Below, piece after piece: positions 29,931 through 53,224 of a stretch of 64,000 nucleotides of DNA. Numbering within the stretch: the stretch's first letter is position 1; each line of letters opens with the position of its first letter. The position numbers were made by a program, and so were the translations under genes. The stretch covers positions 22,692,001 to 22,756,000 of the forward strand of contig NC_043002.1 in NCBI RefSeq assembly GCF_006345805.1, given 5' to 3'. This DNA comes from Octopus sinensis. Lineage: Eukaryota. The notes below the pieces were generated by a model, which was given only the letters and a program-made list of their open reading frames with translations, had not been told where the DNA came from and ran no database searches.

Positions 29931-29992
29931 CCGAGAGGAAGGTACTGTTCCAATGATTGTCAGCGCATTAACGGCAGAAATTGAATCAAGAG
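29931..29992 (+). CDS. BCR/ABR-like gene, RhoGAP start exon (REEGTVPMIVSALTAEIESR)
   Basis: Acceptor tttttttcag|, donor ag|gtatga. Matches BCR RERSKVPYIVRQCVEEIERRG. Confidence 0.9.
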
Positions 29993-30411
29993 GTATGAAA
30001 AAATACATTTTCCATATTGTTAATATTTAAAATGATCTTCTTGTCTTATGACCTATATTTGAGCTGTTCCCGTCACATGCATGCACATAAGAACGACTTG
30101 CGTGTTGTTTGCTTTTTGCACATCCCTCCAGTGTTGGCTCTCCACCAAAAATGTCCTGAGTGTTACCTTTAATATTACACTAATCTGTAAATATTGACAT
30201 CACCATGGAAATTTCTGGAAAATGTATTCATGTATGTTAGTATGCAAAGCTGGTTCTTTCCCTCCAGAATTTTCTTAAGATACCGTAGTCTTCTAGTGAA
30301 GTGCTTGTGATGGAATGACACCAAGAAGTATCGCTTGAGTAATTCACTCCCAACACCGGAGCTGTTCTTTTCGTATTTTGAGCACTTGATTGACATGTGG
30401 TTTTGCCATAG

Positions 30412-30468
30412 GATTAAGTGATATAGACGCATGGAAGCTTTCTGGACTGAATCTAAGCTTCTTCATGT
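30412..30468 (+). CDS. Candidate RhoGAP arginine-finger exon (GLSDIDAWKLSG...)
   Basis: Acceptor ttttgccatag| in the required phase 1. A 12-residue gapless match to BCR GMEEVGIYRVSG. The donor is uncertain: a weak t|gtcttt, with an in-frame stop at 30478-30480. Confidence 0.4.
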
Positions 30469-31299
30469 GTCTTTTCTAATGAGATAGAGCTTCAGGATAT
30501 CTGTTTCCGTGGAAGAGTAGGTGCGTACATATTTTGATTACAAATCTTTTCTGCATAAATATCATGCCACACACACACACACAAACACACACTTATATAG
30601 TGTATATATTGCCATCGTTCGACGCTGGGGCTACAGCTGTGCGATTATACGATCAACTGAATAACCTGCTAACTCAATTAACGTCGTGCAGGTGGCTGAG
30701 AGTTCCACAGACACATGTCTCCTTCATGCAATTCTAGGCAAAATTTGCTTGACTCGGTGTTCGACAAGTTTGTACCCTTCAATTACAAGAATAACCCATC
30801 CGTCTGCCCAATTTCACTCACAAAAATTAGGTCGACCAATTCGTGCGCACACACACTTACGCAAACCCACACACACATACTTACACATGTGCATATAAGC
30901 ACACATGAACGTCGGGAGAGAAGACACTGCCCTAGTGATTGCCCCAGCGTTGGAGCATGCAACTATACAGTCAAGTATTCGTCCACTCTTTTAATATGTA
31001 CAACAAAACCTCAAAAGCTATCGTTATAGTTTCTTTTGCATTCGTATCTTAATAGTGCCCGGTCCAAAATATGTCTATGTACAAAAAGGAAAACCGCGTC
31101 ACTTAAACCAGTTAATATCCATATGCGATATATGTAAGTAAACATTATCTGTGAGTTTTTGTATATGCGAAGATGAGTGAATATATATCAAGGGATATTT
31201 GAATGCTAGTATCTATTATTATGTTTTATTATCAGAAAATGATATCAGTATATACAATTTTGTGAAGAGCATATATTCTTTTCTACACAAGACACGGAA

Positions 31300-31680
31300 T
31301 TTTGGGGGAGGGGACCAGTCGATTAGATCCAGCCCAGTACGCAACTGGTACTTAATTTATCAATCCCAGAAGGATGAAAGGCAAAGACAACCTCGGTGGA
31401 ATTTGAACTCAGAACGTAAAGACAAACGAAATACTTATTTCTTTACTATCCACAAGGGGCTAAACACAGAGGGGACAAACAAGGACAGACAAACGGATTA
31501 AGTCGATTACATCGACCCCAGTGCGTAACTGGAACTTAATTTATCGAAAGGATGAAATGCAAAGGATGAAATGCAAAGTCGACCTCGGCGGAATTTGAAC
31601 TCAGAACGTAACGGCAGACGAAATGCGGCTTCGCATTTCGCCCGGCGTGCTAACGTTTCTGCCAGCTCGCCGCCTTGTGA
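31300..31680 (-). mobile_element. SINE family B compound copy
   Basis: Reverse complement of the 9243-9862 blocks (ggaatttgaactcagaacgta occurs twice). Confidence 0.85.
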
Positions 31681-31887
31681 AGAGTATATATTACATACGC
31701 GTATTAATTATATGAAATTCATTGGTGTATATATCGATGTGTGTGTGTGTGTGTGTTCATGCATGTATGTATCGATCAATCAATCAATCAATATATATAT
31801 ATATATATATATATGTATTTCGGGATGGTCATTTTACTTTTTGTTTGCCAAATAAACACACGTACTATATATTGTTTTCACTCTTTT

Positions 31888-50214: not shown

Positions 50215-50650
50215 GGAGGATGTGTGGTAAGTAGCTTGCTTACCAACCACATGGTTACGGGTTCAGTCTCACTGCGTCGCACCATGGGTAAGTGTCTTCT
50301 ACTATAACCTCGGGATGACCAAAGCCTTGTGAGTGGATTTGGTAGACGGAAACTGGAAGAAGCCTGTCGTGTGGTCGTGTGGATGTGTGTGTGTGCGTGA
50401 CTGTGTGTGTGTGTGTGTGTGTGTGTGTGTGTGTGTTTGACTGTGTTTGTTCCCCAGCATCGGCTGATAACTGATGCTAGTGTATTTAAGTCCCCTATAA
50501 CTTAGCAGTTCGGAAAAAAGATTCATTATGTACTAGGGTTTCATTAAGTACTAGGCTTACAAAGAATAAGTCCTGTGGTCGATTTGCTCGAGTGAAGTCG
50601 ATGCTCCAGCATGGTCGTAGTCAAATGACTGAAACAAATAAAACGATAAA
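50215..50650 (+). mobile_element. SINE family A copy
   Basis: atgtgtggtaagtagcttgcttaccaaccacatggttacgggttcagtc...atgactgaaacaaataaaac. Confidence 0.85.
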
Positions 50651-50708
50651 AAAACTATGCCATTTTAATCCCGAGCAAGGCCAGGTACCTCTGCTATATA
50701 TATATACA

Positions 50709-51750
50709 TTGGGTTGTTCGGAAAGTTCGTGCCGATTTATAGTAGCATACCTTTCGAACATGGTTGAGTCCATAAAATAGGATTTGACTACACCTCCATG
50801 TAAGAAGATTTATGTTCCTATCACCTGTGTTAATTCTGTAACCCTTTAAAATGGAAGATAAAAAAGTTTTCGGCACTTGATGCTTTTCTTTAACCGTAAA
50901 GGGGAAAATGCCTCACAAGCAACCAAAGAAATATGCTCAGTTTATGGTGATGTTTCTTTATCCGAAAGAACTGTACGGAAGTGGTTTGCAAGGCTCCGAG
51001 TTGAGATTGTAGCCTTATTGATAAAGAGCTGTCAGGCAGAGCATCTACTACAGATGATGACCAAATCAAGTCATTAATTGAGAATAATCCACATTGCGCA
51101 ACCCGAGAATTGGCAGAAAGCCTCAACCTATCAAAATCCGTCGTTCATGAGCACCTGGTAAAGCTTGGGTACACAAATCGCTACGATGTTTGGGTACCAC
51201 ATGAGTTGAGTGAGAAGAGCCCTAAAAATGTCTTGCTTTGTGTCTGGTGGGATTGGAAAGGAATTCTGTACTATGAGCTTCTCCCAAGTAAGCAGACAAA
51301 TAATTCTGAGAAATACTGCACACAACTGGACGAGTTAAAAGCAGCAATTCAAGAGAAACGTCCAGAATTGGCTAACAGGAAGGGTGTTGTTTTCCAACAT
51401 GATAATACAAGACCGCATGTTTCTTTGGGAACCAGACAAAATTGCTGCTGCTCGGTTTGGATGAGTTACCCGACAGTCCATATTCACCAGATAGTGCTCC
51501 TTCGGATTTCCACTTATTCAGGTCACTGCAGAATAGTCTTAAAAATTTCAATTCCTTGGATGACGTAAAAAGATACCTTGTGAATTATTTGCCATGAAAC
51601 CACCTCAATTCTGGGCAAAGGGTATTTTCAAGTTAAAGGAAAGATAGAGACGCATTGTACAACAAAATGGTTCATATTTGGCTTATTAAAAATGTAATGG
51701 CAAGTATTTATTGACCTTTTTTCTTTTCTTTCAAATTCGGCACGTTTTCG
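50709..51750 (+). mobile_element. mariner (DD34D-type) transposon relic
   Basis: TIR ttgggttgttcggaaagttcgtgccgattt. Peptides ..KGENASQATKEICSVYG..W, LLCVWWDWKGILYYELL, FQHDNTRPH and YSPDSAPSDFHLF, with frameshifts and a deletion. Confidence 0.9.
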
Positions 51751-52896
51751 ACGTTGTGTATTCAGTTAATTGACCTGCCCATTGAATCCTCTTGTAAATG
51801 CACGGCATTTCACAGGCACGTATACGCTTACTATAATTGTCAGGAAAAATCAGCTGAGTGCAGTGTATAACAAATCTGCCCTCTTGAAAGGCTTCTATAC
51901 AGTTTGTATCTACCTAGTTTCAATCACAAGTTGTAGGTCGATCCACCCGAGGCAAAAAAGGCACTTGTTTATGATGCCATGCAGTAGAAAGGAACCCGAA
52001 ATCTCGTAGTTGTGAAGCAAAGTCCGTAACCATTTGGCTACAAGCGAGTAAATGTATATGTATAGTTCATTTTTACTCACACACGCACAAATAAACAGGG
52101 TATGTGTATGCTTACATACAAAATTATTTTCCTCGTGTGTGAGTGTATATATACATATAAGTGTGTGTGTGTGTGTGTGTGTGTGTGTTCGCGCTCGTGT
52201 GTGTAGGTCATTATTCAGTTTTATTTCAAGATTTCTTTCCAATAGAAAAAGGGCCGGTTTCTAACCTAGATCCAAGGCTCCTTCATGGGAATTTCCAAAA
52301 CACCAACAGGGTGTTTTTGTATGTATGTATGTATGTATGTATGTATGTATGTATGTATGTATGTATGTATGCATGTATGCATGTATGTATATATATATAT
52401 ATATATATATATATATATATATATATATATATATATATATATATTATATATATATATATATACATGAATGTTTAGTGTGTTTTAGTGCATTTAAATAGTC
52501 TGAAATAATTTAATCAAACAGCGTTGGCTGAAACCTATATATTTATTCTATTGTATTTTGGGATGATCAAAACGGGCACTTTTGATTCGTCAATAATTTA
52601 CGTATCGAACACTCTTTCCAAATTATATCAGCTTAGTATGTCTTCCACGCATTTGTTATTGTTGTGTTGATGATGATGATGATGATGATGATGATGATGA
52701 TGATGATGATGATGATGATGATGACGATGATGATGATGAGGAGGAGGAGGGGGATGATGATGTTGTTATTGTTGTGTTTGTCATCATTGTTTTTGTTGTT
52801 AAGATCTAAGTCAACCCATATCGAACAGACCTGTGATCAAAGGCATAGCAGCCGTGACAATCCCGTCTTTTTTTTTTTCTCTCTCATTTTTCCTAG

Positions 52897-53224
52897 TTTG
52901 TACCTGTTGGCCGCCAAGCAAATTCCGAAACCTGACGGCATGATAAAAGTTTTTGCTTCCGTTATCCTTATACCTCATTTGCCATCGTATAGCAGTGACG
53001 AATTCAAAAGCAAAACCGACACATGTGCTACAGCGCTCAGGTATTACGTACAACTGAGAATGCATGGTATAGACTTTGACGATGAAGAGCAGAATGAAGG
53101 CGGAGACAAAAAGAAAAACGATAAAAACGATAAAAACGATAAAAAAGATAAAAAAGATAAAAAAGATAAAAAAGATAAAAAAGATGGAAAACCTGGAAAT
53201 GAAGACCAGAAATGTTCCGTATAA
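52897..53224 (+). CDS. BCR/ABR-like gene, terminal coding exon (LYLLAAKQIPKPDGMIKVFASVIL...CATALRYYVQL...DKKDKK...QKCSV*)
   Basis: Long polypyrimidine acceptor ttttcctag|. The phase-2 start fits 37544. GAP helix F/G similarity (VF..xLL; QVQVLLYFLQL). Stop TAA at 53222-53224. Confidence 0.85.
53116..53187 (+). repeat. Coding 9-bp tandem repeat (GATAAAAA[A/C])n
   Basis: Encodes NDKNDKNDKKDKKDKKDKKDKKD in frame. Confidence 0.9.

Follow-up and report, generated by a model that had tools for sequence, protein, structure and literature searches.

A BCR/ABR-like gene of Octopus sinensis with a conserved RhoGAP-like domain that is probably non-catalytic

The vertebrate proteins BCR and ABR carry DH, PH, C2, and RhoGAP domains in that order and are active GTPase-activating proteins (GAPs) for Rac and Cdc42. 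The gene described here lies in a 64,000-nucleotide stretch of the Octopus sinensis genome (NCBI RefSeq assembly GCF_006345805.1, contig NC_043002.1, positions 22,692,001 to 22,756,000 of the forward strand), hereafter the window, in which a BCR/ABR-like protein with an apparently dead RhoGAP domain had been predicted from the sequence. The window holds most of the gene, at positions 1361–53224. With a probability of roughly 0.75, it belongs to an intact, BCR/ABR-derived octopus gene that has a known orthologue in Octopus vulgaris, and its RhoGAP-like domain is a pseudo-GAP, a non-catalytic module kept under constraint.

In p50RhoGAP numbering, Arg282 is the arginine finger of RhoGAP domains, Lys319 a second catalytic basic residue, and Arg323, Asn391, Val394, and Pro398 are binding determinants (PMC8305018). 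The BH domain of p85 alpha and beta has the RhoGAP fold without these four binding determinants and without the sequence conserved around the finger (PMC8305018). The finger itself is missing from a set of human RhoGAP-like proteins, namely OCRL1/INPP5B, ARHGAP36, DEPDC1A/B, FAM13B, and ARAP2 (CNTD1), which are inactive yet functional; no finger-less case in that review derives from BCR/ABR (PMC8305018).

The octopus gene resembles BCR and ABR in its domain order, with the C2 domain directly upstream of the GAP-like domain, and its DH and PH domains score best against human BCR. It differs from them by the replacement of the finger and of five other residues, a DH domain below the Pfam threshold, a shorter PH–C2 linker, a tail rich in Lys and Asp, and the alternation of two terminal exons. 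Octopus also has several divergent paralogues, as opposed to one or two conserved genes. The same four binding positions are lost in the octopus domain as in the p85 BH domain. However, p85 retains an arginine at the finger position, where the window gene has a valine, and the octopus gene is devoid of the SH3/SH2 context, which points to a loss that occurred independently, in another lineage of RhoGAPs. OCRL1, ARHGAP36, and DEPDC1 are parallels in the loss of the finger itself, but the architectures and origins of the finger-less human proteins are unrelated to those of the octopus gene, and none joins a dead GAP to DH-PH-C2.

The gene model comprises 15 exons on the + strand, all with AG/GT splice sites, with compatible phases and no internal stop. 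They encode the end of the DH domain, the PH domain, the C2 domain, and the RhoGAP-like domain, in that order; the gene begins upstream of the window and its earlier exons are beyond the window edge. The product of the last ten exons (447 residues) matches the Pfam RhoGAP profile (PF00620) with 32.1 bits (cut-off 24.5, E = 1.2e-7) over profile positions 1–141 of 148, and the Pfam C2 profile with 30.6 bits (cut-off 22). A first model with four GAP exons had matched Pfam RhoGAP marginally, with 27.5 bits, and its peptide had no match in a word-indexed protein search. A family profile made of the window protein and its paralogues matched 45 distinct chain sequences of solved RhoGAP or RhoGAP-like structures, the best being ARHGAP15 (3byi, E = 1.2e-24). 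The matches include the inactive p85 BH domain (1pbw, E = 2.7e-8) and, weakly, OCRL1 (2qv2, E = 8.4e-5).

The domain was aligned with MAFFT to three active RhoGAPs of solved structure, ARHGAP15 (3byi), ARHGAP12 (6gvc), and GRAF (1f7c). The following replacements were found, all on the + strand:

Exon 31056–31133: Arg282, the arginine finger, to Val (VYVQKG in place of IYRVSG)
Exon 34157–34291: Lys319, the second catalytic basic residue, to Leu
Exon 34157–34291: Arg323, binding determinant, to Ser
Exon 52897–53224: Asn391, binding determinant, to Gly
Exon 52897–53224: Val394, binding determinant, to Lys
Exon 52897–53224: Gly397 to Ala
Exon 52897–53224: Pro398, binding determinant, to Ser

None of the six residues given for p50RhoGAP as catalytic or as binding determinants (PMC8305018) is retained in the domain encoded by the window. 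The original prediction had relied on two motifs, and both were found on the + strand where it placed them. LLYYLSHLP (34222–34248) aligns to LKMFFRELP, with the conserved Lys and Arg replaced by Leu and Ser. DGMIKVFAS (52934–52960) aligns to (A)NLGVVFGP or (Q)SLGIVFGP, with Asn or Ser replaced by Gly, and the following Gly-Pro by Ala-Ser. With the arginine finger replaced as well, the evidence for a dead GAP exceeds that of the original prediction. The motif alignment is free of gaps and anchored by the invariant elements VP.IV, IE.R, Y..G, LP..LL, and H…VF, and the same alignment was obtained from Pfam, from the profile matched to PDB sequences, and from MAFFT.

The orthologue identified in O. 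vulgaris by alignment search is the 870-residue protein "breakpoint cluster region-related isoform X2" (P0024); its locus (L001, OX597819.1) and the window are collinear, with a nucleotide identity of about 98%. All 15 exons are present in O. vulgaris with the same splice sites, including exons that are skipped in P0024 and the terminal exon of the window, termed d. The two species differ by 4 substitutions over 1790 nucleotides of exon, two synonymous and two within a single codon that exchange V and I, compared with 1.7% in the aligned non-exon sequence. The six GAP exons differ by one synonymous substitution over 849 nucleotides, compared with 2.3% in the surrounding introns. Intronic segments matched in size to these six exons have 18.5 mismatches on average, and at most one mismatch was observed in 0.045% of 20,000 draws (P = 4.5e-4). 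Taken separately, the four skipped exons have one synonymous substitution in 418 nucleotides (binomial P = 0.003), and exon d has none in 328 (binomial P = 0.002). The codon of the finger valine is identical. The sole difference in exon length is an in-frame 18-nucleotide change at 53113, corresponding to two units of the AAAAACGAT repeat (KND) in the Lys/Asp-rich tail.

This comparison of two genomes is strong evidence for purifying selection on the exons, and their near invariance next to diverged introns argues against a decaying pseudogene. The proposal of a paralogue rather than a pseudogene thereby holds, also in view of the at least four finger-less lineages found in Octopus. Its qualification as fast-evolving is correct between paralogues (25–33% identity) and fails for the recent past, as hardly any exon position separates the window from O. 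vulgaris. The domain thus combines homology to RhoGAP, loss of the finger, and evidence of maintenance by selection, which together define a pseudo-GAP. The divergence of the introns from O. vulgaris is uneven, with 0.9% in positions 1–25500 of the window and 2.3% in positions 25501–54000. Haplotype structure, a local difference in mutation rate, or the alignment of repeats could account for it.

The relationship to BCR was examined with a profile of the DH-PH region built from the O. vulgaris orthologue and two paralogues, the N-terminal part of the DH domain, which is beyond the window, being read from P0024. Among solved structures, the best DH match is human BCR (5n6r/5n7e, E = 2.9e-9), ahead of ARHGEF3 (E = 1.9e-7), and the best PH match is also human BCR (5oc7, E = 1.1e-6). 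The DH domain of P0024 is weak, with 15.5 bits against Pfam RhoGEF for a threshold of 27.6, whereas that of the paralogue P0019 passes with 31.7 bits. In RefSeq, the orthologue and the paralogues bear BCR or ABR-like names. The DH-PH-C2-RhoGAP order and the matches to BCR therefore place the gene in the BCR/ABR family, as originally proposed. No finger-bearing octopus ABR or BCR turned up in two family searches, which missed even members of their own query and were not aimed at the canonical gene. No literature linking octopus and BCR-like genes was found.

Exons were located by tblastn and position-specific scans with octopus paralogue proteins. A human BCR sequence, used as a tblastn query and as one of the four rows of a position-specific scoring matrix (PSSM), served as a lead only; the conclusions rest on sequences from databases and the PDB. 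The 15 exons are as follows:

1361–1413, + strand: DH domain (…VMLQHPEWLRYRVYYEVR); 100% amino acid identity to P0024 residues 254–271; AG/GT sites kept in L001
3951–4055, + strand: last DH helix (ELIKYTPQHHEDNASLRKVLEYLKPTDNVTRMPNY); P0024 residues 272–306 with a single V/I difference; splice sites
5233–5345, + strand: start of PH (ALVKSGYAVHLLDHKRYLCYLFLFPNFLFITRPTLEK); 62% identity to P0019 and 100% to P0024; this region of the family profile aligns with the BCR PH structure 5oc7
6147–6214, + strand: PH insert (NEVRYKPYYSIMLDNDSIKTYDM); 100% identity to P0024; splice sites and phase
8663–8769, + strand: PH insert (EFLSDVRTDDIRTTLHELQKTRKQYQIILDMAKCMC); 100% identity to P0024; splice sites
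11978–12116, + strand: C-terminal part of PH (EYELTLLVPSLRLIIQEQNGHKNMFLFSSLVELLTWKDLISNSRCG); tblastn matches of paralogues, 100% identity to P0024; splice sites
17622–17702, + strand: start of C2 (ENSLLHSSGTLNVYVHQIRSCDSSLPP); tblastn, splice sites, and P0024
22899–23107, + strand: core of C2 (ADTYVTLEVDSLNGFF…AGIYD); same exon in P0004, P0014, and P0017; Pfam C2
24971–25036, + strand: end of C2 (IWHGYLSESYKLVTVPLLPSKL); internal alternative donor after 24989 in the annotated O. vulgaris isoform
26133–26275, + strand: linker and start of the RhoGAP-like domain (…RERIFGEQLSVILA); PSSM outlier (20.5, next best 7); splice sites and phase fit; 0 of 143 nucleotides differ from O. vulgaris; skipped in P0024
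29931–29992, + strand: first RhoGAP helix (REEGTVPMIVSALTAEIESR); 0 of 62 nucleotides differ from O. vulgaris; skipped in P0024
31056–31133, + strand: arginine-finger loop, (V)PGPKYVYVQKGKPRHLNQLISICDI(C); PSSM outlier; phase 1 to 1; one synonymous difference from O. vulgaris
34157–34291, + strand: LLYYLSHLP, with Lys319 to Leu and Arg323 to Ser; splice sites; 0 of 135 nucleotides differ from O. vulgaris, with heavily different flanks; skipped in P0024
37442–37544, + strand: (Y)EPESTKCTSAIRLFNTIQKPERDLLYHLIQHLAT; 100% identity to P0024 with identical boundaries
52897–53224, + strand: terminal exon d, with DGMIKVFAS, the Lys/Asp-rich tail, and the stop codon at 53222–53224; splice site; conserved in O. 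vulgaris

Downstream of exon d, AATAAA is found at 53753 and 53946. The exons 34157–34291 and 52897–53224 have polypyrimidine-AG acceptors, a GT donor, and an intact frame, in agreement with the open exons and good splice sites that had been reported. The span first given for the gene, 29931–53060, starts exactly at the first base of an exon and covers the GAP part. Its end lies within the terminal exon, which continues to 53224, the gene is larger, and the finger exon 31056–31133 had been missed.

The finger exon was the single outlier of the window, at 31055, when scanned with a BLOSUM PSSM of the 27-residue finger segment of the paralogues (score 25.0, maximum of 15 elsewhere, mean of −34); a small hidden Markov model of this segment had no match, and the BLOSUM PSSM was used instead. 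The exon (ttaatag/TG CCC … ATA T/gtaagt, 78 nucleotides) has phase 1 at entry and exit, and its final T completes, at the junction with 34157, a Cys codon common to all paralogues. The existence of this exon ruled out a direct splice from 29992 to 34157, which would be in frame and delete the finger loop. Read-through of the donor at 29993 (RGMKKYIFHIVNI followed by a stop), considered as a decayed relic of the finger, was put down to fortuitous similarity after the real exon had come to light. The candidate exons 24622–24720 and about 29522–29590 were discarded, as their phases do not fit and they have no homology in any paralogue.

P0024 supports ten of the 15 exons, nine at both boundaries and exon 24971–25036 by its acceptor only. 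In this isoform, a donor internal to the last C2 exon (CTAA/GTGAAT, at 24989/24990) is joined to 37442. Four exons between 26133 and 34291 are skipped, so that the GAP-like domain loses its N-terminal half as one cassette; the reading frame is kept because the skip is of exactly 465 nucleotides. P0024 ends in another terminal exon, d' (L001 87869–88750, past the end of the window), and does not use d. The protein assembled in the original prediction is therefore not an annotated isoform. Exons d and d' are diverged duplicates, with regions that are 72% identical over 304 nucleotides and GAP parts with about 63% amino acid identity. Each contributes the final third of the GAP-like domain and a different basic, low-complexity tail.

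Paralogues were found by an exhaustive search with a single C2 exon (22901–23107), which returned three Octopus bimaculoides proteins of 361–484 residues (P0004, P0014, and P0017) with one full-length match each. They contain C2 and RhoGAP domains and are named "breakpoint cluster region protein" or "protein-like". An O. sinensis member of 743 residues has a DH domain as well. The family consists of at least four lineages in Octopus: the window gene with P0024, P0014/P0020/P0031/P0032, P0004/P0019, and P0017/P0022. The window protein is 25–33% identical to members of the other three. The residue at the finger position is I in P0004/P0019, L in P0014/P0031/P0032, and I in P0017/P0022, and the losses are predicted independently in three species across the four lineages. 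The simplest history is probably a single loss of the finger before the duplications, as judged from the hydrophobic finger residue of all four lineages. The paralogues differ in the basic residues near the finger.

The octopus paralogues XP_014782258/XP_036359602, A0A0L8GCV6/XP_052824455, and XP_014790547 ("breakpoint cluster region protein-like") are collinear over PH-C2-GAP, have a hydrophobic finger residue, and share exon boundaries with the window gene, such as the Cys codon split at the junction of the finger exon with the next. Their GAP domains score 59–97 bits with Pfam, compared with 32 for the window gene, and one of them retains Arg323. In P0020 (O. bimaculoides XP_052824455), the equivalent of exon 29931–29992 is present twice in tandem (REKRDVPLILESCVKFIEERG, RTHK, and the same 21 residues), due to either an exon duplication or an artefact of assembly or annotation. 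The tandem reveals that, in this family, an exon ends directly after "RG", which also speaks against read-through of the donor at 29993.

In each species, the contigs that encode the paralogues have one and the same length (117,080,279 bp for O. bimaculoides, 120,472,873 bp for O. sinensis), suggesting that a single chromosome per species carries them. In O. vulgaris, the next gene downstream is a paralogue arranged tail to tail about 3 kb past d', with the finger segment NIYLTNG:

L001 91640–98753, − strand, equal to L002 10001–66157: gene of P0032, the annotated isoform of which also skips GAP exons

A homeobox gene and a TYW2/TRM5-type methyltransferase gene border these two genes.

The introns of the window gene contain remnants of mobile elements:

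One of the three intronic sites 32825–33800, 37745–38250, and 50862–51600, + strand: decayed Tc1-like DNA transposon (HTH_23 and HTH_Tnp_Tc3_2, by Pfam)
Two of these three sites, + strand: decayed mariner/Mos1-like elements (HTH_48; Transposase_1, E = 3.8e-21, by Pfam)
27950–28660, + strand: retroelement fragment with a zinc-binding motif of reverse-transcriptase type, in the intron preceding exon 29931–29992 (zf-RVT, E = 1.6e-5, just under the Pfam threshold)

A direct repeat of 2 kb (45074–47047 and 60085–62078, 94% identical) is probably an interspersed element present twice; its second copy is located where the collinearity with O. vulgaris stops. A short interspersed element of about 400–450 bp (translated as …SNSAEVDFAFHPFGVDK…) is present as a tandem pair at 8845–9691, 96% identical and adjoining exon 8663–8769, with further intronic copies at 31317–31676 (inverted) and 43735–44054.

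On the basis of its residues, the RhoGAP-like domain would be unable to accelerate GTP hydrolysis through an arginine finger in the standard way. Standard docking on Rho GTPases is also improbable, as the canonical GTPase-binding surface appears to be gone. By analogy with the p85 BH domain, the closest parallel, it is most likely a non-catalytic module for protein interaction or regulation. This module would be placed in a membrane-directed PH-C2 scaffold, the content of which would vary by splicing, through the in-frame skip of the N-terminal half of the GAP-like domain and the two alternative terminal exons with their different basic tails. Exchange-factor activity of this copy is doubtful because its DH domain is weak.

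Several observations weigh against this interpretation. The 870-residue O. vulgaris model lacks exons 26133–34291 and has d' in place of d, so that, from this annotation, the full GAP-like domain may be rare or conditional. The conservation test relies on one close relative with about 2% divergence, from which the ratio of nonsynonymous to synonymous substitution rates cannot be estimated. An AlphaFold2 model of the paralogue P0014 was unusable, with a mean predicted local distance difference test score (pLDDT) of 36.7. Asn391 is not universal in active GAPs, being Ser in ARHGAP15 and ARHGAP12, so that this position alone is not decisive. A catalytic residue could conceivably come from elsewhere, as the sequence has a Lys and an Arg 2 and 5 residues past the finger position (VQKGKPRH).

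The absence of exons from P0024 raises the question of whether exons 26133–34291 and 52897–53224 are decayed relics, the real product proceeding from C2 to 37442–37544 and d', and the assembled dead GAP never being made. Exactly these exons are skipped in P0024, the record containing only the longest product per gene, and GAP exons are also skipped in P0032, the O. vulgaris model of the neighbouring paralogue. However, the skipped exons are open in both genomes, with canonical splice sites and compatible phases, and homologous exons are included in the RefSeq models of P0019 and P0031. Together with the scarcity of substitutions in the skipped exons and in exon d reported above, and with the exact in-frame 465-nucleotide cassette, as regulated alternative splicing would give, this makes the relic explanation unlikely.

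Some other GAP families, among them RanGAP and RapGAP, work without an arginine finger, and the octopus domain could be an active GAP that uses another basic residue or positions the catalytic glutamine of the GTPase itself. The strong conservation of the domain and the basic residues near the finger loop would fit such a mechanism, but Lys319 and all four binding determinants are replaced as well, and the basic residues next to the hydrophobic I or L of the paralogues are not constant. Finger-less human RhoGAP-like proteins, and p85 without the binding determinants, are inactive as RhoGAPs (PMC8305018). An active enzyme is thus quite improbable. Still less credible is an ordinary ABR/BCR orthologue disguised by a wrong gene model or misalignment, which the original prediction had named among the ways in which it could be refuted. 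The domain is indeed very divergent, and a single-sequence search of solved structures with an early model that still lacked the linker and finger exons reached only E = 0.17, with ARHGAP12. This explanation is contradicted by the gap-free motifs with their invariant anchors, on which three alignments concur, and by the losses shared by four lineages in three species.

An intact gene with a constrained pseudo-GAP is therefore the preferred reading. A broader scenario can be put forward tentatively, in which the genes are lineage-specific "double pseudoenzymes" of octopus, possibly of cephalopods. The DH and RhoGAP domains would both be inactive yet selected, the proteins would serve as PH-C2-anchored scaffolds or GTPase decoys with switching of the cassette and terminal exons, and a single loss of the finger would have preceded the expansion.

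The current O. vulgaris model leaves out conserved coding exons, and a name assigned automatically, like "breakpoint cluster region-related", can mask that an enzymatic function has been lost. In practical terms the gain is modest, namely defined constructs to probe a dead GAP beside a weak DH domain. If the double-pseudoenzyme scenario is true, it would mean a neofunctionalised gene family and not an isolated decay. The shared loss of the finger and the tight conservation of the exons point to a retained non-catalytic role in the signalling of Rho GTPases or in scaffolding at membranes, and this in an animal whose nervous system is unusual.

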